DNA of 35,438 nt from Bipalium vagum (taxonomy: Eukaryota): positions 1 through 35,438 of the forward strand of contig JBBMKC010205043.1 of assembly GCA_037834085.1 (NCBI GenBank), read 5' to 3'. Positions 1,866 to 32,000 of the stretch are shown here, piece by piece; the stretch's first letter is position 1; the number at the start of each line of letters is the position of its first letter. The notes under the pieces were generated by a model. That model worked only from the letters and a program-made list of their open reading frames with translations, was not told the DNA's origin and made no database searches. The position numbers and the translations under genes were made by a program.

Positions 1866-4800
1866 TTAATATATTATTGAATTATATTTCTCAAATCCAA
1901 AAGTATTTTTTTTATTTAGTCAATTGATAAAAAAATGAATAAATCGAAATAAATTTATATTAATACACAATATTTATAATATTTATAATGAAACTTAGAT
2001 TCATCAATATGTAAATAAATGAATACAAAACTTGGGTGTAAAAAATTAAAATCTTCATAAAAAGTGAAAATTAATTTCAAAAATGGTGAATAGTTAAATG
2101 ATTTTTTTATTATTGTTACCTATCCAAATATCATTATCACTCCTCAATATTTATCAAAAATTATAAATTATATTAAAATTATTTTGTTGAATTTTATTTA
2201 TGAGTCAGTTTCAATACAATTATGCTTAATATAATCAAAACCAAATTTAATTTATTCTTTAATCAGTTAAAATTTTATAAAGATAATTAAGAAAAATTTC
2301 AAAATTAAACAAACCCAAAATGTGATTAAATATATTTTCAATTAAAATTTCTGTGTGACGGACTTAGAATACAAAATAATCGTTTATTTAACTTGTTTAA
2401 ATTTATAGGAATAATAATTTCTATAAGATAATATTATTACAGAATAACAGAAGGTAACGGAGAATATCCTAAATTAATTTTAAATAAAACATTGAAAAAA
2501 TAAAAATAAATAATATTAAAAGGCTTTTATAATTGTATTAAAAAGTTGAATAAATCTCCTTTAAATTTTCATTGAAATAATTTTATAATTGAAAAGATTT
2601 ATTTAATAATATTATTCGGCGAAGGTTATTTTTAAAAATATTAAATTTTCATAATTTGTTATTTTCAGAATTGTTGTTCTTTTATTTTTGGAATTTTTTT
2701 TTACTTATTAATATTAATCTCAAAAAAAGAAGTAAAGAAAAAATATTTTAATAATTTAATTTTTATGTGAATATTTGTTTGAAATTCAATAAAATATTGA
2801 ACGAAATTATTAATATTCGTTTTAATGTTAATTTCAACCAAATAACCAAAAGATTAATAAATTTGTCTGGGCTGCGACTTTACGAACTCTGGATTTCGAC
2901 ATTCATATAATTGATTATATTTACTAAATCTTCAAAGATGATGAGAAATGAAAGAAGTTTCCTTAATTTTTCAAGAGAAATTTCTTTTTCATTTATTATT
3001 ATGTACATTGTGCAATTATTTAACATAAGAAATAAATAAATTTTCAATAAATTTTAGTCCTTTAAAGTTCTAAATATAAATAAATTTTTGTCTTTATTTT
3101 TTTCTGTACCTTTTTTGTTACTTTTCTCCTCTTTACACTGAAATTTTTGTTTAAAGATATTAAAAAAAAATTTTTGATTAAAAATATTAATTAAAATTAC
3201 CTTTACTTCAAGATGAAACTTTTTCGGACTGTTTGACAAAAAAAATTATATTTAATTTTAACGTAATTATCGTTTTAAAAACTACTCCCAGCTCAAAAGA
3301 GTGACCTGTTCGCGTTTGGAAAATTTTATTATTATTATTTTATTTTATCTGAAATATTATATAATATCATATGCATGATTCAAAAAACTTTTCCTCATAA
3401 AAATAACGTTTTCCTTTGAACGGAATTATAAAAGAGAAATATTTTATTTTTAGAAACTGCAACGAAAATTGTTTTAATTCATTGAAATCGATTATATTAT
3501 TCTCTAAGTTAATAGGAAAATGGGAATTATTATTATTTAGGCAAATCTGAATTTCCTAAGACCCCATGATCCAGATAGACAATAACAGCAGAATATAACG
3601 ATAAATGAAGGAGATTTTAAATCTCACAAGAAACGTACATAATTTATACCGAAAGTAAAATATCCACAGAAATTGATATTTTTCTTGCTTTTAAATTATC
3701 CGTCATTTTCCGGTTGTTTTTTTCAGAGGGAATTATATCCAAACAATAAGGACTTCCGTAGAAAGAAAATATAATTTATGAAATTCTGAAAGAATGGTTT
3801 ATTAGTGAATATAGATTCTAAAACGGGTGATATTTGTTAAGACAATTTTATTAGGAAACTGATATTTGTAGATGTCAAAAATAATTGAAAATCATTATTC
3901 AATCATTAAATTCTGTTTTTCACTTGTAATATTTGTAAAATTAGGTGTAAAATATTTTTTAATTATAAAAGCTACTTGATCATATAGAATAATATAATAA
4001 AATGAAGTAAGAATAAAATTAAAACAACACTAATATTTCATTGAAATAATTCAGAGACCCAAATTTAACAATTTCAACAAAAGAATACAAATGTTCTAAG
4101 CCAAAATACAGAAAGAATAAATTCAAGAAATTGAGTGAAACAATAAAAATTTTTAAAAAAATATTGAAGAAAATAAACTGTCTGCTTGTAAAAATATGTT
4201 ATATAAAAATGTTGGTTTTTTAACGTTGTGTTTAATTGCTATATCTTCAGCCGTAATAAAGATTTTCCAATAAATTTTGTTTAAAAAACTTTTTTCCCAA
4301 TAAATTCATAATTATTGATTTTTTCTAAAACTTATTATTAATTACAAATTTATCGTCATGTTTAATTTTCTTATAAATACTTTATACTCTACAGAATAGA
4401 AAATGAACGAAAATTTGCAAGTAGAAATAAAAATAAGGCACAATTTTAGCCCGGTACTTGTCAAACACTAATGATAAGAAAATATTAAAGTGGAAAGTAA
4501 CCACCCATAATTAGCCTCGAATTGAAAAATAAATGAAAATACGGAAGCTTCAGATTTTGTCTCGTTAATTTAAGTTTTAAATTCGTTAATTTACTCTCTA
4601 AACCCGGTAATTAGATTTTTAAAATTCTTTTACTATATTCTAAAAGTTTCGGTTAATTTTTTTAATCTTAAATTTAATGCATTACATTTTTTACATTAAT
4701 AAATTAAATTTAAATTTTAAAGGAGAATTTTAATAATGTTCTTACAAATAGATTAATATTATATACATTAATAATATTTTTAAAAAGAATTCATTTTATT

Positions 4801-7800
4801 ATTGTTTTAATATGTACTCCTTATAAAATATAGTTTTAAATGTAAAAATAATAATTTACTGGGATTCATTTTTGACGATTTTTATTTTTATTATTTGTGT
4901 TTCTAACAGTTTTCTATATCTTTAATTTTCATATAATCTTATTTTATTTGTGGTATTGATGGAAAAAATTAAAATAAAAATATGTTTAATGTGTCTAATT
5001 AATCTTCATATATGAAATATCTTTAAAATCATTTGATTTTATCAAAAGATGATAACATAAACACATTAAAAATATCTTTAATTTATCCATTTCTGATCAA
5101 TTTTTGATCTAATATTAAATAACATTAATTAACGTTCTTAATGATGTAAATTGATAATAATTATCGCTCTATTTTGGGAATTTGACATTATTACAGAAGA
5201 TTTTATTAAATAAATACAGAAATGTTGTTAAATATATAAAATAAGACGTTCTGTGCAATTTCAAAAAACATAAATTTTAAATATTTTCAAAAATATGCAT
5301 AAATAGTTTAACGAAAAATAATAATAAATAAAAATCTGTCGTCAATTTTTTATGTACATCTTTATAGTTGATTAATGTATATCCTAGAGAATTATGAACA
5401 CTGGAAAGGTACTCATAAAATCTCCAATCTTTAAGCTGGGGATGTGAAATATTTCACTTCAAAGGCTGTCACAAAAACATTACTGAAACTTCTAATAGTA
5501 GTACATTTTATCCTTCAATATATATTATTTTACCAATAAAACAAACTATGTGAAGTGGACAATGATCATGCCTGTCAACCCACGCCGTCAATAAATAAAG
5601 AAAATATGTTATCCAATCTAACAATAGGGACAAAAAAAAGGAAAGTAGAAAGAAACGACTGAAGATTTATAAAATCCACATCCTAAACTAGAGAAAGTTT
5701 TTTTTTATAGAAAATAATATTTTAATAAAACTTTTTTTATCGTTTCGTGAAAGCCTCTCTCAAAGACAATCTCAATATCTGATGATTTTCGTGATTCCTG
5801 ATTGTTTCAAATAGCGACCCCTTTTAAGGTCTTCAGAAAAAATATATTTCATGAATTAATGAAGTTGATTATATTGCTCAAACAGATATTTGGTTGGACA
5901 GAAAGAAAAGAAAAAGGACAAAAGGAAAATAATACTTTGAATACATTTCTGTAAAATATCTTGGCGATTTCAATATGGATATCGTCACAGAATCAATGAA
6001 ACATTATATAATGACGACATAATCCGACTGATGTAAAAAGAGAGCAAAATACAAAAAACCTAATATTCTCCACACTCTCCCCCGCTTTCTGTAGACCTTA
6101 TTATTAATAGAAAGGGAGAATATTTTTCAATAATTTCATCCTATCAATCTTAATGTACTTTAATTGATGACTTCATTATGAAATCTTTTATTTTTGAAAA
6201 GCTCAAAAAATATTAAATTACTAAAGTTGAATTAGAAAATGAAATATTCATTATTCTGTTTAGTAAAAATTGTCAATTTACTTTATTTCGTCTGAAAAGA
6301 AGAAAAATTTTAAGATGAAAGAGTCAAGTCTCAAAGTCAACAGAGGGAGATAAACAAATTCGATCAGAAAGAATTCTATGCTGAGTTTGATCGTTTACAA
6401 ATCTACGAGTTTATAATTCAAGAGGATGGGAACAAAATAACGGGAAAATAGAATATTACCATTGACGAACAAGTTACTTAATTAAATATGGTACGCTGCG
6501 GTTGATCGGGATCATCTGCTGATCGGCAATTTGGTCAGGATTAGTTAGAGTCTGAACCAGAATCACAATGTCGAGATGCTGTGTTCGTCAGGAAATGTAG
6601 TTGAGATTAAAGGAATATCCAGATGAAACGGATTCGAATTAAACAAAGTTTTTGTATTAATAAAACAGATTTTGACAACGGATCGAAGCATTTCTTTAAA
6701 AAAAATTACCTGGGGCATATATTTTTTATTCACCATGTTACTAAAAGAAAGGTTTTCTAGATTTTCTTATTAATCGTCTGTTATTCCATTTCTTTAATTA
6801 TTAAGACTTTTGAATTGCTTTTATGTGCCAAATAAATATTCTTAGAAAAGAAACATGAAAATATTAATTACTTTGTTAATACTCATTTTCTTTGGATAAC
6901 AATGACAATGAAGATTTATTCATTTTTTAATTATACAAATATCCCTCTGTATTTTATTTTCCCAAAAGTAAATCAACAAACCTATATTTTTTTAGCCAAT
7001 ATTTTTTAATAAAATAAGTTTAATTAGATGAGATTTCATTATATATTAACAATATTAATAATATATAATATATACCTTGAATATTAAGGATTAAGACTAT
7101 ATCAGTTTTTCTGGATATTAAGGAATATTAGAGCATTTTTTTATTTTTCATAGTTAAGGTCAACAATTTATTTCAGTCATAAGTAACTCAACAAATTTTT
7201 TAATCGAGCTTAGTTAAAAAAAATTTCTTTGCGTCTTTTTACTTTTAATATGTAATCTAGAATTATCAAAGTATATTTTGGAACAATCTTTAAAAAGTAT
7301 AATTCATTTTGGTTAGTATAATTCAGTTTTATATTTAAAAAAATTGATTGTTAACTTACTTTTTGGGGCAACTTTATACAATAACATATGTTTATTATGA
7401 AAATAATAGAGTTACACAATATTCGGGATCATTAAATCTGATCGAAAAGATTTTTTGTCACATCATCTACTTTGTAAACAAGATCATTATATTTTCAACA
7501 TTTCAATCAAAGATCAGACCTAAAATTATAAATGAATTCTCAAAATAAATGTTATTCTTATAGACTGATATTTATTCCTAGAGTCTACTAGTTTTCCTTT
7601 TTCTGATGGTTTCATAAAAAAACTATGGTAATTATTCAGAAATAGTAAAAAAAAATGCAATGTTTATCAATTCCAAAATATGAATCCTATCCGAACCTAA
7701 ATTCTGACCTCAGTCGAATCTCAATCTCATTAATTAACAGACTGAAATATTGATCTTGTACAAGACAAGTGTAATACTTTTCTAAGATTTCTGTCAAAAC

Positions 7801-8255: not shown

Positions 8256-8542
8256 ACATTTAATAAATATGTTATTATTTTTATCTGAACTAATTTATCT
8301 GAACTATTGTTATGTTTACTATGGATAATCACATATTTATACTTTTAATGTAATTCTCTTCATTTTAAGTAGATGATATCTGTAATTTTAGACTTTCATT
8401 TCTTTATTTATTTATCCACTTTTAAGTAAAACTCATTTTGAACATAACAATAATATTATTATTTACTTATTAATATTATTATTATTATAAGAGAAAGAAG
8501 GAAAACGAGATGAAAAGAGCAGAAAAAATGAAAAAAGAATAA

Positions 8543-15290: not shown

Positions 15291-16508
15291 TTAGGAGAAC
15301 CCATAAGTAATCAATTATTTAAGTGGCAAAACAACAAAAAAAATTTAAATACATTTATTTCTATTTTTAATTGATTATATAATTTCCATCGTTTTCTTGA
15401 ACCTTTTGCCATCTTGTTGGTACAGTTTCAATTCCCTGGCCATAAAATTCTGTATCCTATGAAGAGAAATATGATTCTAGGTGAGTTTGAACATCATCGG
15501 CATTTTTAAAGTTTTGATTCTTCAGGGAATGTTCCATGGACCGGAATAAATGAAAATCCGATGGCGCTATGTCTGGAGAATATAAGGGGATTTGATAAAA
15601 CTTCCCAGTCTAGCTGCTTTGTTTTTTCTTTGGTTAACTTTGGTGTATGAAACCTTGCATTACCATGTTGCAATATTACCCCTTTTCTGTAAACCAATCC
15701 TGGTCGTTTTACGAACAACTGGTTTTGTAATCTATCAAATTGTTGGCAATACAATTCAGCCGAAACTGTTTCTCCTGATTTCAATAGTTCAAAATGAATG
15801 GGATGCCACCACATCCCACCAAACTCACAATAATACCTTCTTTAGAGTGAGGGATGATTTCGGAACGGCTAGTTGATTTGGAGAAAGCCATTGTTTGGTG
15901 AGCTTGTTTTTGTTGTTGTACAAGACCAATTTCTCGACACCAGTAACAATCCTTCTTACAAACGGATCATTTCTTTGTCTGCACAAAAGAGATGTGCAAA
16001 AAATAGATGTGGAACCCATATGTAAACCTTTCTGATTTCTTTAAGATGTCTTTGAACTGTTGACCAAGTAGCTTGAAGAGTTTTTGTTATTTCCTGGATA
16101 CTCATTTTGGGATTCTTTTCCACCGGTGCTTTTAGAGCGTCTTTATCGAACGTCCAGTTCGAGCGCTATTAGACAAGCCAAAATCACCATTTGAAGATTT
16201 TCGAAACCAATGTTGGAACTTATTGACTTTTAATACGTCTCCGTACACATCTTCTTTGTTGCAACGGTTGCATTAACAACCGATCGAAAATGAAACAGTA
16301 TGCAATGACGTAAATGTTCATCACTTGGTTGATTCTCCGCCATTTTATATCAGAATAATAAAAACGTTTGAATTTATTTATAATCAATATTCAAGGTCAA
16401 TGATTGTAATTTAACGTAATAAAATACGTGTTTATATATTCAAGGTCTGAGCTAGAAATAAGCAAACACTGCATACTAAAATAATTGATTACTTATTGGT
16501 TAGGGTAT
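15291..16508 (-). mobile_element. Near full-length mariner element with pseudogenised transposase (about 16343-15370)
   Basis: TIR core ACC(C/A)ATAAGTAATCAATTATTT at both ends, flanked by TA. Transposase reads MAENQPSDEHLRHCILFHF..., RIVTGVEKLVLYNN, FELLKSGETVSAELYCQQFDRL, ILQHGNARFH, YSPDIAPSDFHLF, RWQKVQENDGNY, with several frameshifts and decayed catalytic Asp residues. Confidence 0.92.
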
Positions 16509-22832: not shown

Positions 22833-23069
22833 ATGGCAAATAAGGATAAACAGTTACAAGATAAGTTACAAATAATAATAGCAGATCTATTGAAAGATGA
22901 TGACAACAAGTATTGTGTTGATTGTGATGCTAAAGGACCTCGGTGGGCTTCTTGGACCCTGGGAATATTTCTATGTATAAGATGTGCTGGAATTCACAGA
23001 AATCTCGGTGTACATATTTCACGAGTAAAATCTGTAAATCTTGATTCGTGGACACCGCAACAAGTGGCT
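22833..23069 (+). CDS. SMAP: SMAP ArfGAP exon 1
   Basis: MANKDKQ...[52 protein letters not shown], donor |gtagga, 46-nt intron. Confidence 0.95.
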
Positions 23070-26000
23070 GTAGGAGTTTTAGTAAAATTGTTGATTTACT
23101 TGTGTTTCATGTCAGATGCTGAAAGAAATTGGTAACAGTCGCGGAAGGGCAATATATGAGGCTAATCTTGAAGACAATTTTCGCCGTCCCCAAACCGAGT
23201 CTTCATTGGACGTCTTTATACGGGCCAAATATGAACACAGAAGATATATTGCAAAGGAATGGATTCCTCCTACTCCGAGTGTGGAACCTATAATTGAGGT
23301 GATAATGAATGTTATTTTATTGAAATATAAGAAGCTTTCAGGAAATACGGAAGTTAGATTTAAACCAAAACAAAAAACGTGTTACATGTACAGTTAACAG
23401 TGTAATAAACAGTTCAATAATTCCAATTTCTCGACGAGAGAAGCCCGTAAATGTCAAAACAATCGAGGTTGTTTTTTTAATTCTATTTTAAAACTGAAAT
23501 TTAGTCAGTTTGGGTTAAATAAATTAATGTGATGTATTTTGAATTGATGCCTAAGACACGTAATATTTCTTTCTTTTGTTCACTATCAAACATGATTTTT
23601 GATCATTCTTTACTGCACATAAACTGCTTTCTATTACAACCAGCGGTTACCTATCAGTGGCACTTAGTAAATCAACGATTTTTATCAACATTGCGCATCA
23701 ATAATTCCAGTATAATGAATATAATTAACCAAATTTAACGTGATAATGGCGAAAGGTCAGTTTAAATATGTTGATTATACATAATTAACATTCTTGGTTC
23801 TATATTTCCTTCATATACAGAATTATGCAAGATTTCTCAAAAAATATTAATAATAAAAAGGTTTAAATATTTTAAAAATCTATAAATTCAATAAATCTGT
23901 CAGTATGTCATCTTTCTCGAAAAGCGATTCTGATTGGGGAACATTGACGATATTGATCGCCGGTTGTCGTTCGTTGGCTTGCGAGCTTTCATTGTAGACA
24001 CTGTAGACGAGTTTTGATTTCTTTTTAATTTTGTGTTCATAAGCTAATTTCAGAGCCAGATCGATCATTGGGGAGATTGTTTCAAGACTGAGAGCTGAAG
24101 CGTTGTCAATTATCAATATATATTTATTGAATTTAAAGGTTTACCGAAAATGATAATCTTTCCGTTTCTTGTGAATTTTATCAATGATTTGTATTGATTA
24201 TCTTTATTTAAACCCTTAGCAGTGCGGTCCATGTAATAGTAGCAGAAATGATCGCTTTCTAAATCATAACTAATTGTAATAGTAAAACCTGTTTTTCCTT
24301 TGATGAAATTCACAAAAAATTCATGACAAAAAAAACTCACATGCAATGCATCGGATTTGCGTCTGTCAACGCCTGCAAATCGATTCTGTACGGTACTTGG
24401 CCCTTTGTGAAGATATTAAATACTTTATAACCACGCAATTTGACTGCAAAGCCCAATTTCTGTATTCGTCGAGCGATTATCCGCGATCCCCGTTTGGCGC
24501 CTGCTAAGCTTTTGGCACCTAAAATTACCATTTTTCCTGATGGGTATATTTTCACCTTTTCCAGCTTTGGAGATCTCAGTTTGGTTTCTAATATTTCCTG
24601 CACACGAGTAAAATCCGTCGACATATATCAATGGGAAAATGACGTTACAATAGATTTACCATGTTATGTTGAATGAATTCCACATCGTGACCTCGCAGAC
24701 TGATGTCCATCAAGGGCAACCTTGTGCTCAATTTCATCGAAGCTGATACATTTGTGATTTTGAAGCTAATCAAGGCTTTGTTTTGCGTTCCCTTCATGTG
24801 CTCTCCGTCCATTTTACTCATTTCGACAATGCTTGAAATATTTTTAAATAGTTAACAAAAGTTTCAAATAAAACCAGTATTATTTTAAACAAATTTTTTT
24901 AAAGAATAAATATTTTATCGAATGTTACAGTTTTAGTTTTATTGATATTTTTTCTGTAAAAATATTTTTAAATTCAGTTTCTTAAAGTATTTATTGAAAT
25001 ACAAAAATTTAATAATTTATAAATACAATATAGGGGATTTAATTTTTTGTAAATTGATATTTTCGATTATACTGATTTAATAAAATCCTATAAAATTTTT
25101 AAAATGATAATTCGATTGTAGGCTCCAAGATCATAATTCATATATGGTTTTAATTTCATACAGTATTTCAAATATTAAAATAGAAGTAAATCAGTTTAAT
25201 TATTAGGTTATTTTATTAATTCTTATTAGCATATCAAATTTTGTTTCAGGTTGCTTATAGTTAAAATTATGGAAAATAACGAAACGCTTTAAATGCTTTT
25301 CTAGTAACTTAAAGGTTTCCTTTTTCAAAGATCACCAAAATTTGTAAGTTAAAAATTTAATAAAAACTTTGTAAGTTAATCTAAAAATTATCTGACCTGA
25401 CAAATTCAATTCGATGATTAAGAAAGAAATGTATATAAGAGAGTTGAGACAAACCTCGATATATCCTCACCATAAATATGTCATCATATGTGTTGATTTT
25501 TTCTCATTATAAAGAATGAAATCCGTGCAAAATTCCTTGTTACGATTTCAACATATATTAGTACGTTTTCCCTTGAATTTCCTTCGCATACCCAATCATC
25601 CAATATTGTTCTATTAAAATACTTCCACGATTTTATATCAGCTTCATCAGCATCAACGATTGAATTATTTCTGAGTTTATCAAATAGTTCCTTGAAATCG
25701 ATGTTTTCAAATATACAATATAAATTTTCGTTTAAAAAAAAATGATAATTCATTATCTTCAAATTATCGGCAGTCTGATTCATCTAAGACCCCATTGAAT
25801 AATTGTAGATGATTTAAAGGCATTTAGAAATAGGCAACTTTGAATTTTCAAAAATTGAAATGAATCGACAAAAGGCTTTTTTAGTGTGTTTTAAATCTTT
25901 TATTTTCTATGCACATTACAGTTTTAAAAATTTGGTATATTGTTGAAACAATAATTAATTGTAAATTTATAGCTTTCCTTAAAGATTCATCATTGGATAT

Positions 26001-29000
26001 ATTAGGCTGGCAAGAAAGTTCGTGCGCCCTTTAATGACAAGTTAAAATTAAAATTGTTTTATTGACAAAACAATTTAAATCAACTATGTTTACCATTATT
26101 ATTAATGATCTTTCTACTAAATTCATGATACCATGTTCGTAGAACTCCTTTGGTTTATTCGCAAAATTGTCAATGTCTCTTCTGACAGACTCCTCATCAT
26201 TGAATGTTTTCCTTTTCAAGGAATTCCGGGTGATCAAAGATACATGAAGCTTGGCATTGTCGTGTTGGTAGACAACACTTCCGATTTGTCAATTGGGAGC
26301 ACTACATATCAGAATTGATAACAGTTCATAATAAATTAAACCTTTAAAATCGCACCAAGAAGAAGGCATGATCTTTGGGGGGCGCATCCATGTCTTTATT
26401 GACGATTCTGGTGGCTCACCAGTACAACCCTTGGACCTTTTACGGAACACATTGTCATAGATAACTCACTTTTCATCACTGGTATCAAATTACTTCAAGA
26501 ATGGATGGTTTTCTTGTCGTTTCAGCAATGAATCACATATTGATATACGTTCCATAAATTGGCCTTCATTAATTTATGCGGTACCCATGGTTAGAGTTTC
26601 GAAACGAATACTAGATTACACAGTCTTTTCTAACGCTGTATGCGATGTCTTTAGTATTTTACGATTTCCCGAACCGTGTTCGATGGATTACTTTCAATTA
26701 TAGACTCAATAGCGCTTGGCTCAATGTGAGATGGGTGTCCTGAGCGGGATTAATTTTTCATATCGAATGCTGTACAACTAGAGTTGGTATACATTTTTGG
26801 TATACTTGTACTGATAAAACATCATCTCAATATACTTAACATATTTTCATATGTTCATACGAGGTTCGCTTACCTTTTTAAATTAATATAATATTTATAA
26901 ATAATATGATACTTAACTCTTTCAAAATCAAACACCAAAAAATGACGAAAATGTAATTTTTTCTTGCATAATGATATTGTATTTATCACATAAGACTATT
27001 ATATTATTTAAACAGCAACTAAAAAACAGTATTGATTTCTTTTTATCGTAAACATACGTGATCCGATTTTTTCGAATATTCTATGATATCTTTGTGTAGT
27101 AATCTCATTATCATATCTTACAAATGAACAATGAACTGTCAAATAAACCTTTCAAATAAAAAATTTTTTTGACCTTATAAGTAATTATCTGAAACTCGAT
27201 ATTGGTTCATTAAATTAATCTTAATCGATTTATTAATCATAATTTCATCAAAAATAACAAGAATCATTTTAACCTATGAACTTTAATTTAACTTTGACTT
27301 TTTAATTAAACCATAGAAAGATCAATAATCGTTTGTCAACAATCAATGGGGATTCACTGTATTAATAACTTTAGTAAATAATAATTAACGCTAACCGATT
27401 CTCATTGATATTTTATTATTAAAAGTAAGCTTGGAATATTAGCTTCTATCTTTTAACAGACCGATGCTACCAAGTCGCAAAATAATGGGAATAAAATCGA
27501 TTTGCTCGGCTTAGAAAATGATACTGGTACATCGGTTAATAACGATGAATCATTTGGTGATTTTATTTTTGCTACTCAATCGAACTCGTCTTCAACCAAA
27601 AGCCCCATTATAAGTTCCTCGGTTATCAGCGAAAATAAAGCCCAATCGGCTGTTGACGACTTAATGGGTCTCAGTGAGTTGAATACACAGCCCGATCCAT
27701 TTTCCAATGCAACAGAATTGAACGAAACATCTGGCTTGTTTCTGGGTTCGTCGTCGGTTATGCAAAATAGTTGCTGTAAAATGGACAAAAATTCCATTTT
27801 AGCATTGTACAATAACAATAATAACAGCAGCAATAACATGAGACCACAGGTCTTCGGACAGATGAGCAATTCTTCTGGTTGGGCCACAATGCCAGGATCA
27901 ACATATCACAATGGTTATGTACAGACAGGTACTGTTATTGTATTTGGAAAATTTAGTATGATTTCTGTTACAGATTTCCAATCTCAGGCACTTGGTAGAG
28001 GGGCAACTAATAGGGGTTATCATTTATCGCAGTTTGGTCAAAGTAGTGCATTTGGAGATCAGAGTAATCCTTTTTTCAACAATAGTTCAATAATTCCCAC
28101 ACGACAGACTATATCACTCTCATCTATGGTAAGTTTAATATTTAATTTTTGTTAATTTATCTGTAATTATCAATTTTAAAAATATTTTCTTTTATAATGT
28201 TAAGTTGATAAGAAAATAATGCTTAATACATTCAAACTTTATAATAGATTTTATGAAAAAAATTTGTTTGAAAGCATTAATTTATGTACAATTTTAAAGC
28301 TTTGAAATTGTTTTACATTTCCATAAGTTTTACTTTACTATACTATTAGAAAAATATCAAATACAATCAATTACACTGTACAAGTTACAATTTGACAGAA
28401 ATTTTATTGAGATCACTCGTAAAACCAGTGATTCGACAAGGGTGCATCAAAATGAGTACCGTGCAAAACTTTTTCAAAACATTTGGAGTAGAAATGAGAG
28501 CGTCGAAAGTGGTACAGGTCTTGGGCGTTCCACGGAAGTAGGCAATGATTAATTAAAGATCTTGGTCGATCTATTTGTTATTGAGAAATATGCAAGGCCA
28601 CGATGTTTCAAAAATAAAAAAATCCAATTGCTTAAATCTCCAATACAAAGGCATGTATTACTGCCAATATCTTTCACCAATCTTTTTGAGTGGAAAAAAA
28701 TAAATATTTTTATCTTTTTGGAAGCTTTATGAAGAATAGCATGATTGACGCATTAAACTTATGCGATCAACTTAATATTATTTCTAAGTACCGTTCTAAA
28801 AACGGAGACAAACTAATTTGTTTGAGCATGAAATAAAGATTTGAAATATAGTTATTATTATTTGTATTATTCTATTTATCAATATGTTTATATGTTAAAT
28901 ACATGGTTTTTTATAATTTAAATAAGTCATTTTATAAATATAAAAAATTTACCTCTATACAATGTGAAATCAACATATGACATTCTAAAATTACATAAAT

Positions 29001-32000
29001 ACAAATTTTCTTAAATATTATTACCTCTCAATAACATCAAACCTCCTTATAAAGTCAAAATCCTCGTACCGAAGGCTGATGCTATAAAGAGGTTTTACTG
29101 TATTGTGTAAAAGTTTACAGTATCCTTAAGCAGTGGATACTTGGAATACTAAACTGAATATATATTAAAGAAATAATGGAATAAGGTTACCTAGGTGACA
29201 ATAGGAAACTGCTTATGACTTGTTGGATTCCACACCATTGATGAAAAGCCTACAGCAGAACTATGATATTAATACATAAGACGTTTATGATCGGATAATA
29301 TATTAGGGTTTTCTAATTGAAATGTCGTTTTTTAAATAATATTTAATTAACTTGTTTTAATATTTTTTATATCGTCCATAATAAAAAACTGTTAAATTCA
29401 ATTTAAAATCAAAGATCGATGTAAAGTGTAAACTATAATTAAAAAACTTTATCCTATTAAATTTATTTAACATATTTAAAAAAGAATGAAAAATTTAAAA
29501 TGACGCTCATATCCGGCATTATATGAGTTAAAACGGGGATCAAATTTCACAGTTGACACTAAAAATATCAAAGATTTTTACGGTGAAATACTTGATGTTC
29601 GCAAATGGTAATCTCAGTTTGCAGAACACAGGGTCATCGACAACCTGTGGTGGATAATGATGTGTTTAAGGATATCATCGAAATAGATCCTAGACAAACA
29701 TTAGAAGAATTGTCTTTTCTATTAAATTGTAGTATCAGCAGTATATGGAACCACATAAAACTGAGGCAAAAGAAATAGGTTCGGTGTTTGGGTTCCTCAT
29801 GATTTAACTAGAACTGGAAAATAATAATTGTTATTATGGATTCCAGATCTGTCACTCATTATTTATTCCAAATTTAAAGGAATCATTCTTCAAATGGATT
29901 GTGACTGAAGATGATAAGTGAATAATGTATGAGAATATCCACATAACAAAAATCAGTGGTTATCTCCAGCCCAAACCGCTGTACCAGTGTCGAAAACAGG
30001 ACTTCATACAAAGAAGGTCTTATTGAGTGTCTCCTGGGATTACAAAGGAGTAACTCACTTTGAATTATTAGAATTTGGTCAAACAAAAAATTCCGATGTA
30101 TATAGTAAAATTATGACCGTTTGAGAGATACATTAATTGTGAAATGTCCTGCATTGATCAATAGAAACAAAATAATTTTTCATCACGATTTTTTCAAATC
30201 ATCGTATTGTGTAGACGCTTATGCAAACTTTAAAAATATTCCTGGAAAATAAGAAAGATTGCTTATCTTCTTTGCAAGTCTTTATACACCTGAAGAATTC
30301 TTAATAAGAGCGACAAACAGAAATAACTGGATTTTTAACATGAAGTGGTAAATTTTGCTTTTGCAATGATATCATACGCTTTGAAACACGTGATTTAAAT
30401 ATCATAAACTGTGCGAAATAAATTATGTTCCCTAACTCTCAATAAAAATACAATATGGTTATTTTTTATAAGTAAAGTAGCCAGTTCCAAAATAATAGTA
30501 AGTTATTTTATCAAATTTTACGACTTTCTATTGCATTAATATCGCTATAGGGTTACAAAATCTCTGATTTATCCAGAAAAAGTAACCGAGATGCATATAA
30601 GTTACCTCAATAGGTAATATCTTTTCTTAAATAAAATTGAAAAAAATAATAACAGCAGATGGTATAAGGAAATAATATTCAATTTCATCTGTGAAAAACA
30701 CTGGTACTCAAATAGTTGTCAAGTCTATTGAAACACTCTTCTCACTAGATTACTTACCACTTTTATGTAACATTTTATTTGAATGTTTATAAATAACGCT
30801 GGTAATGTTTTATTTTCTATTGTGATTGATTTAAAATTTCTCATGTAAACCAGCGTTTTAAGGAAATATTCTAATGGAATAAAGTCACTCAGTCTAAGGA
30901 TGAGGATTTTTTGAGAGAATTCTTTCATACCGAGAGAACTTGTTTCTTTGTTTGTGAGTGTCATGTGGCATTCTCTTGATGAATCACAAATTGTCACAAT
31001 CCTTTAGCTCTATTTGTGTCTATGAAAACTTAATCAACACCAGTTCTTCGTTTCAAAAAGTTAAACAAATGAAGTCCAATGAAAGACTTCCAGAAATAAG
31101 GCAGTCAGTAATTGGATTAGATTAAATTTTAAATTACCTAAATCAGTTATACAGTGTGTTCCATATGTCTCCGTGAAAAGTAAACTTAAATATCTTTCAC
31201 TAAATTCAATCGATTGAAATTTCTATTTATATAATATTAAAGTATGTAAGTTTAAATTTTGTTTTAATATTTTAAAATTAGATTTAACAACTGCCGCTTG
31301 ATTTGAAGTTAAGAATCAAAACTGTACTTTTAATGGCCAAATTCAACTCAATTTGTGTTTTTAAACGGAAATTAAATGCCGAATTTGAGAAAACCTCACC
31401 AAGTGAAAGTGCTATGAGACTTTATCCTGGAAGACCAAGGGTGATCAAAGAAAATGAAGTTCAGAAAATTATTGAAGTTATTGAAAGTGATCCACAATGC
31501 AGTGTTCGATCTGTTGAAACCACCTGCTCCATTTCATGAACAACAACCCAACGAATTATGAGAGAACAGTTATCATTGAAACCCTTTAAGATCCATTTCA
31601 CGCTCCTGAGCATTTTTCAACAAATATACCACGGTATCTTAACGCTTATTTCCCGAACAGGTGGTTCAATTCGATGGGCTTCCAGCTCACCAGATTTAAC
31701 TCCTCTTGACTTCTATTTATGGGGCCATTTAAAGAATAAAATAAACAAATCTGAAATCAAAAATATTGATGATTTGAAAACAAAAATCACCGAAGAAATA
31801 AAGTGTTACCACAGAAACTTTGAATAGCGTATTTTTAAATATTGTAAAAAGGATGAATTTATGTATATCAGTTAATGGTAGTCATTTCAAAAAATTGTTG
31901 TAAATTTTTTTATGAAATACAAATTAAAAGATTTGTCTTCAATTTTATAAGACAAGCGATTAAATATCTCAACATGCTTAAGAATTATTAAGTTTACCTT

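Follow-up and report, generated by a model that had tools for sequence, protein, structure and literature searches.

TRF2 (also known as TBPL1 or TLF) is a bilaterian core-promoter factor for TATA-less programmes (ribosomal-protein, histone H1 and spermiogenesis genes) and is normally encoded by a single gene. Here we analyse a TBP-like gene of the flatworm Bipalium vagum, found on the minus strand at 23880-24821 of contig JBBMKC010205043.1 (assembly GCA_037834085.1); the whole stretch of 35,438 nucleotides is referred to as the window, and the gene as the window gene. Judged by its sequence, the gene is real, intact, nested within another gene and of the TRF2/TBPL1 type. We consider it probable that the gene is functional and a rapidly evolving member of the TRF2/TBPL1 (TLF) group. 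Three or more in-paralogues with introns, the window gene among them, would descend from a flatworm TBPL1 gene together with an intronless multi-copy subfamily.

In TRF2, three of the four TATA-interacting phenylalanines are altered, and the protein does not bind the TATA box but does bind TFIIA and TFIIB (PMC4180970), with which it acts at TATA-less promoters (PMC4180970, PMC5006001, PMC3142196). Alteration of at least three of these four residues is the criterion for TRF2 applied in PMC4180970; in our alignment, all four are altered in the window gene. Lineage-specific TBP paralogues include Drosophila TRF1, vertebrate TBPL2/TRF3 and cestode TBP1/TBP2, which arose by duplication within one lineage and are believed to act at particular sets of promoters (PMC3142196, PMC13134418). 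According to a recent study of cestode TBPs, TBPL1/TRF2 has not been systematically assessed in these flatworms (PMC13134418).

Like bilaterian TBPL1, the window gene encodes a two-repeat core with a short N-terminus, lacks the intercalating phenylalanines, keeps helix H2 and carries a deletion in helix H2'. It also groups with the TBPL1 proteins of Limanda, Lingula, Tetranychus, Blomia and ascidians, outside the TBP clade. Several features set it apart from bilaterian TBPL1: (i) all four phenylalanines are replaced, as against three of four in TBPL1 (PMC4180970); (ii) it has the TBPL1 residue at one of seven diagnostic sites and reads D-L-E-S-D for E-P-E-L-H; and (iii) it has an 11-residue basic insert, a tail of ~45 residues and a multi-copy family in its genome. 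Drosophila TRF1, TBPL2/TRF3 and the cestode TBPs lie in or near the TBP clade, whereas the window gene lies on the TBPL1 side, and these paralogues keep the aromatic DNA-binding residues (for the cestode TBPs, PMC13134418) that the window gene has lost. The additional TBP-type genes of the same genome (C247175, C191960 and C212524) are also distinct from it. Its nearest outside relatives are the trematode TBPL1-like proteins of Fasciola hepatica (THD26721.1) and Paragonimus kellicotti (KAF6780051.1), with 42-46 % identity in exon 2.

Results and Discussion

An intact four-exon gene

A scripted splice model of the minus strand gave the following structure:

24660..24821, minus strand: exon 1, 162 nt, start codon ATG at 24821-24819, 54 codons, ending in phase 0; short N-terminus and S1-H1-S2 of repeat 1
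24598..24659, minus strand: intron 1, 62 nt, GTAAAT...CAG; position common to C228787 and C206307
24341..24597, minus strand: exon 2, 257 nt; N-terminal stirrup, S3-S5, helix H2 (13 residues) and S1'-H1' of repeat 2
24270..24340, minus strand: intron 2, 71 nt, GTGAGT...TAG; directly 5' of the Y(E/D)xE motif
24145..24269, minus strand: exon 3, 125 nt; C-terminal stirrup with the 11-residue basic insert, and S3'-S5'
24095..24144, minus strand: intron 3, 50 nt, GTAAAC...CAG; after strand S5'
23880..24094, minus strand: exon 4, 215 nt including the TAG at 23882-23880; helix H2' (starting LSLETIS) and the ~45-residue tail

The coding sequence (CDS) of 759 nt encodes 252 amino acids followed by TAG, with no internal stop, so that the four exons, GT-AG introns and uninterrupted 252-residue protein of a preliminary description made from the letters alone were reproduced exactly. 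At the composition of the window, we estimate from base frequencies that ~9 % of random codons are stops; a chance origin of an intact 252-codon frame is excluded. None of the three intron lengths is divisible by 3, and stops occur in most of the intron frames, which is why a listing of open reading frames (ORFs) yields nothing but disconnected fragments of this gene, as had been remarked. The GC content of the CDS is 39 %, compared with 25 % for the window and 29 % for the gene's own introns. Introns 2 and 3 occupy the same places as introns of the canonical TBP gene of this genome (judged by its ORF breaks) and of the paralogues described below; with introns of 49-56 nt in the paralogue C206307, the window gene's introns fit the local gene structure.

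Searches with the window gene were made exon by exon, and the joined model was used in the frame check, in local tblastn against fetched loci, and in the alignments, hhalign comparisons and trees. In exon-wise searches of its own genome the gene is single-copy, and exon 4 has no further match there. DNA contigs of two sequencing runs contain the sequence: one piece covers intron 3 unspliced, and none shows a splice joint at the introns of the model. A contig joint in run X1 (23893>24836) skips 942 nt, nearly exactly the gene, and was considered as an empty site. We rejected it as probably spurious because its short side is 21 letters long, the sequence is AT-rich and the assembly holds no empty-site contig.

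TBP repeats and fold

Exon 2 matched the Pfam TBP profile (PF00352) with 36.3 bits (E 5e-9, profile positions 43-85), above the cut-off of 22.9 bits, and exon 1 with 16.5 bits (profile positions 1-33), which is under the cut-off when the exon is taken alone. Exon 2 also matched TBP chains of the PDB (E 4e-12) and a local TBP/TLF profile (82.8 bits), and exon 1 gave a weak match to the TBP chain of E. cuniculi. Searched alone, exons 3 and 4 had no significant match to TBP profiles. When the joined model was compared with a TBPL1/TBP profile by local hhalign, its residues 15-207 matched profile positions 5-185 (probability 99.4 %, E 1e-21); the probability reached 99.9 % once the paralogues were added. 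Exon 3 shares 40-45 % identity with its counterparts in the paralogues C206307 and C228787, and exon 4 is 33 % identical over 52 amino acids to the Fasciola TBPL1-like protein, with which it has the hexapeptide SLETIS in common. The hhalign alignment over residues 15-207 and the likeness of exon 3 to the paralogues thus indicate that both TBP repeats are present; together with the Pfam matches of exons 1 and 2, this agrees with the two repeats proposed earlier.

Structure prediction was performed on the ORF of an intronless relative, C245815. The model is a two-repeat saddle (predicted local distance difference test, pLDDT, 76.6; template modelling, TM, score 0.80-0.85 to 1CDW, 1C9B and 1QNA), in which the insert region has low confidence and the C-terminal tail is helical. 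From this model we infer a saddle fold for the window gene's protein.

Placement on the TBPL1 side

When exon 2 was searched against 1.84 billion representative proteins, 598 matches were obtained at E <=0.001. None of them exceeded 46 % identity, and the gene's own product is absent from this set; the metagenome scan returned one generic match, at 42 %, and no orthologue. The top matches of exon 2 (P0002, P0003 and P0005) were discounted as tandem-duplicated gene models with inflated scores. The named neighbours are TBPL1 proteins, the Fasciola 'TATA box binding protein 1' and the Paragonimus hypothetical protein.

We computed unrooted trees with IQ-TREE under LG+C20 with posterior mean site frequencies (PMSF). 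Six divergent sequences of this genome, the window gene included, form a clade with support of 100/100, and the TBP clade leaves them out at 99/97. Union of the divergent sequences with the genome's own TBPs was rejected by the approximately unbiased (AU) test (log-likelihood difference 45.5, p 0.00015). When the trematode proteins were added, the divergent clade joined them at 97/93 and the TBP clade was supported at 100/99; the order within the divergent clade is unsettled in this tree. In the trees, the Lingula and mite TBPL1s follow the trematode proteins as neighbours of the window gene. When the other divergent members were removed, the window gene still fell on the TBPL1 side, next to the trematodes (92/84); support for the TBP clade was again 100/99. 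Placed alone in this way, the window gene has an end branch of 2.48, compared with a median of 0.36. The trees and the AU test thus bear out a TRF2/TLF rather than a TBP type, and the branch length bears out the high divergence that the preliminary description had claimed.

Individual residues were also compared. A one-residue deletion in helix H2' is common to the window gene and the TBPL1s in the alignment. The motifs SLA.AK.G.R.IARRI and SLETIS are in common with Fasciola and Paragonimus, and the Asp at the position equivalent to F190 is common to the window gene and the trematode proteins, which read EPELD. We defined as diagnostic those sites at which TBPL1 and TBP are each conserved but carry different residues (n = 7). 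The TBPL1 state is present at 1/7 of these sites in the window gene, at 5/7 in C228787 and at 4/7 in Fasciola; neither the window gene nor C228787 has the TBP state at any of them (0/7 each). In the joint tree, the branch of C228787 is 0.48 as against 0.88 for the window gene, and C228787 has an intact YEPELDP stirrup.

The relation to TBPL1 is not one-to-one, since at least three intron-bearing copies and the intronless subfamily fall in one clade sister to the trematode proteins. By these sequence comparisons, the divergent group is made up of flatworm in-paralogues of TBPL1/TRF2, and the window gene is among the more derived of them. What had been called a lineage-specific paralogue is thus lineage-specific as regards the expansion, and as regards descent is a co-orthologue of a known factor, with trematode TBPL1-like proteins as nearest outside relatives.

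A remodelled DNA-facing surface

The residues below are listed by yeast TBP numbering, which derives in part from the alignment of exon 2 with PDB chains:

Intercalating phenylalanines: F99, F116, F190 and F207 in yeast; M54, Y72, D146 and T173 in the window gene (all four replaced in the alignment)
Groove threonines: T124 and T215 in yeast; L80 and F181 in the window gene (replaced)
Central asparagines: N69 and N159 in yeast; N24 and N115 in the window gene (kept)
N-terminal stirrup: IREPK in yeast; LRSPK in the window gene
Helix H2: SRKYARIIQKIGF in yeast; a 13-residue basic H2 in the window gene (kept)
TFIIB triad: E186, E188 and L189 in yeast; D142, E144 and S145 in the window gene (D-E-S for E-E-L)

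At the F116 position, the paralogues C206307 and C228787 have W where the window gene has Y. The trematode proteins, unlike the window gene, have W at F116, F at the F207 position and no stirrup insert, and in Fasciola the protein extends into a long, unrelated C-terminal region. The 11-residue basic insert of the window gene lies at about residues 155-165, at the tip of the C-terminal stirrup, and its KGL core is common to the family (hhalign and alignment).

Three members of the family have a short acidic/hydrophobic motif at their very C-terminus: at 23883-23912 of the window (minus strand), in C206307 (L033:2490-2522, ILDILLDDI) and in C245815 (L013:755-781, EILDSLL). The tails are otherwise unalignable, and this may be a shared linear motif.

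An expanded TBP family in the genome

The assembly (440 Mb in 272,664 contigs) was searched with PF00352 and exon by exon. The TBP-family loci found in addition to the window gene are:

C105233 (L001), with a second version on C223492 (L004): canonical TBP with introns
C247175 (L002): intronless TBP, 184 amino acids
C191960 (L005), with a relative on C200379 (L031): TBP-type paralogue of 216 amino acids with all four phenylalanines kept, 58 % identical to database protein P0151
C212524 (L006), C93199 (L009) and C223453 (L010): further divergent TBP-type gene in three versions
C206307 and C228787: with the window gene, subfamily A, intron-bearing and divergent
C245815:11-784 (L013): subfamily B, intronless, intact ORF of 257 amino acids
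C28200 (L019) and C155812 (L028): subfamily B, 95-96 % protein identity to C245815 over the short stretches covered
C206654 (L036), C201548 (L035), C177451 (L027) and C215497 (L026): subfamily B, 76-85 % protein identity to C245815, broken or partial

The TBP-type side of the family is therefore expanded too. Within subfamily A, C206307 has an intact five-exon model of 254 amino acids. C228787 has four exons at 1695-2367 (L034) and a last exon at ~8312-8536 (L037:413-637), which follows exon 4 at a distance of ~6 kb. The C228787 core shares 97 % identity with P0004 (UniParc UPI000601C873, from a close relative), but identity in the tail is only ~57 %. Subfamily B comprises at least four to five copies with 81-98 % DNA identity over 0.2-1.3 kb. 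Stops or breaks in the frame disrupt C206654, C201548 and C177451, and the sole database relative of the subfamily is P0001, from an ENA metagenome, at 53 % identity.

A mite TBPL1 query of the genome found no other TBPL1-like locus, that is, no conventional TBPL1. The window gene is not the lone hidden paralogue of the preliminary description but one member of an expanded family that includes C206307, C228787 and the intronless copies. That description had named, as a finding that would tell against it, a sole TRF2 orthologue with a branch of ordinary length; we found other TRF2-type copies and a long branch. A flatworm genome thus holds an expanded, fast-diverging TRF2-type family and no conventional TBPL1.

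The N-terminal domain of TFIIA-gamma was found at two places in the assembly, C171013:4174-4275 and C208153:18430-18531 (49.5 and 33.6 bits), and TFIIA, a partner of TRF2, may have been duplicated as well. The assembly also contains three intact COX1 sequences that are 75-79 % identical to one another (L022 on C253947, L023 on C246471 and L024 on C253320). The COX1 contig with the highest AT content uses mitochondrial code 9, which is that of flatworms and echinoderms, with AAA as Asn (356:4), AGA as Ser, ATA as Ile and TGA as Trp. This set of sequences is consistent with an assembly that contains flatworm DNA and also foreign DNA, from prey or a parasite. All longer TBP-family contigs that were checked have a GC content of 22-34 %, like the window.

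Constraint and alternative explanations

Is the window gene under selection? About 5.5 % of the possible point changes in its CDS would create a stop, none of which is present, and all six splice sites are intact. The dead copies of subfamily B show that unconstrained copies do gain stops in this genome. Differences between the window gene and its paralogues amount to 0.63-0.68 at third codon positions, 0.44-0.52 at first positions and 0.36-0.39 at second positions, and the GC content at third codon positions (GC3) is 0.45 in the CDS compared with a background of 0.25. Among 45 positions conserved in both TBP and TBPL1, the window gene keeps 25, the paralogues 28 and the Fasciola protein 31. 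The synonymous divergence (dS) between the window gene and its paralogues is saturated; for C206307 against C228787, dS is ~2.8 and the nonsynonymous divergence (dN) ~0.37. For the family as a whole, function is supported by the high identity of the C228787 core to P0004 beside a much less similar tail, by the intact model of C206307 and by the saddle predicted for C245815. The intact frame, the order of divergence over codon positions (third, first, second) and the GC3 argue for constraint, and on this sequence evidence a function of the window gene is probable.

Several observations weigh against a functional gene of the TRF2 type. In the two runs that contain it, the sequence is present in DNA contigs only, with no splice joint at the introns of the model. 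No orthologue was found among the representative proteins or in the metagenome scan. The gene's own branch is long, and attraction to the faster-evolving TBPL1 sequences is possible. Exons 3 and 4 are not recognisable as TBP individually. Finally, the window gene is more derived than either of the other two intron-bearing paralogues, with the TBPL1 residue at a single diagnostic site, and its E-P-E-L stirrup motif has decayed to D-L-E-S; both could mean relaxed constraint.

Taken further, this last point leads to a recently dead or dying duplicate, an unprocessed TRF2-type pseudogene that has yet to acquire a disabling mutation. The family does yield dead copies (C206654, C201548 and C177451), and a pseudogene would fit a gene that is the most derived of the intron-bearing copies (1/7 diagnostic residues, a decayed TFIIB triad, four phenylalanines lost), that is seen in DNA contigs only and that has no annotated orthologue among the representative proteins. 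We regard this explanation as rather improbable, given 252 intact codons and three GT-AG introns at a composition where ~9 % of random codons are stops. With 5.5 % stop-making changes and with insertions and deletions added, we estimate that the frame would have stayed intact through no more than a few per cent of neutral change. The GC3 has not relaxed to the background, the divergence over codon positions points to constraint over most of the gene's history, and the residues of the structural core and of H2 are kept at the rate of the intact paralogues. A different alternative accepts the function and makes the window gene the lineage's principal TRF2/TBPL1 orthologue in an ordinary TRF2 role, the other copies being derived extras. 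It draws on the missing conventional TBPL1 locus, on exon 2 being, in this genome, the best match other than TBP to a mite TBPL1 (48 bits), on the sister position to the trematode TBPL1-like proteins when the gene is placed alone, and on the SLETIS motif in common with Fasciola. C228787 is nonetheless the better candidate for the ancestral role, by its shorter branch (0.48 as against 0.88), its 5/7 diagnostic residues and its intact YEPELDP; the end branch of 2.48 is roughly twice the ~0.9-1.15 that separates the trematode proteins from the node they share with it, and the order within the clade is unsettled. We therefore think this alternative unlikely.

Could the gene instead be a lineage-specific duplicate of canonical TBP, comparable to Drosophila TRF1 or cestode TBP2, that came to look like TRF2 through fast evolution only? 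Two of its three introns coincide with the ORF breaks of canonical TBP, and exon 2 resembles TBP (43-44 % identity, 45-49 bits) about as much as it does TBPL1 (38-46 %). The shared introns may, however, predate the split of TBP and TBPL1. Moreover, the AU test rejects such an origin (p 0.00015, log-likelihood difference 45.5), three trees leave the gene out of the TBP clade at 99-100 %, the H2' deletion is of the TBPL1 type, the F190-equivalent Asp is common to the trematode proteins, and C228787 has a TBP state at none of the seven diagnostic sites. An origin from TBP is therefore very improbable, and a functional, fast-evolving TRF2/TBPL1 in-paralogue is the explanation that we prefer.

A proposed role

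What could a TRF2/TBPL1 in-paralogue of this kind do? By analogy with TRF2, it should be a TATA-independent core-promoter factor. The window protein, like TRF2, would not read the TATA box; it would be brought to TATA-less promoters by partners bound to its convex face and N-terminal stirrup through TFIIA-type contacts. Its remodelled C-terminal stirrup and acidic/hydrophobic tail probably alter the choice of a TFIIB-like or other partner, and an altered choice of partner would underlie a sub-functionalisation of the paralogues.

A bolder proposal, which we put forward as doubtful, is that a flatworm lineage turned its single TRF2/TBPL1 gene into a family with three or more spliced copies and several without introns, each nucleating a different TATA-independent preinitiation complex (PIC), for example at stem-cell, germline or somatic promoter classes. 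The copies would differ in their DNA-facing surface and have an extended basic C-terminal stirrup and an ILxDLL-type motif, and the window gene would be the most specialised of them. Expression of the copies in different cell types, if it occurs, would make them a natural system for studying how changes in saddle, stirrup and tail redirect PIC assembly. The 'undescribed transcription programme' that the preliminary description attached to the gene is speculation.

Host gene and surroundings

The window gene lies antisense within a SMAP-like ArfGAP gene, of which the following parts were recognised:

~22875-23072 and ~23116-23256, plus strand: two ArfGap-domain exons of the host gene (Pfam PF01412, 102.5 bits over profile positions 3-68 and 24.2 bits over profile positions 68-116)
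27505..28152, plus strand: downstream low-complexity exon of the host gene, homologous to C241963:4251-4904 (38 % over 211 amino acids)

C241963:4251-4904 sits 2.1 kb downstream of the ArfGAP exons of C241963, on the same strand. By this homology we assign 27505-28152 to the host gene as a later exon, which places the TBP-like gene between host exons, antisense to them, in the ArfGAP intron to which it had been assigned. For annotation, this means that small multi-exon genes lying antisense in introns of an AT-rich genome escape ORF-based views.

Every transposon nearby had been described as decayed. Among the places examined, this holds for a mariner-type remnant at 15506-16019 (minus strand), where a broken transposase with a partial Pfam Transposase_1 match (15506-15814) lies among short broken ORFs. 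Short ORFs at 31303-31827 (plus strand) look transposase-like by eye and gave no Pfam match. A run of 130 N at 1736-1865 is an assembly gap or a mask.

The PF00352 search of the genome gave no TBP match in the paralogous ArfGAP gene on C241963. This paralogue (1837-2112 and 4251-4904) has 85-96 % amino acid identity to the host gene in the ArfGap exon and an extra intron, and a further ArfGAP copy, 76 % identical, is present at C28728:2662-2799.

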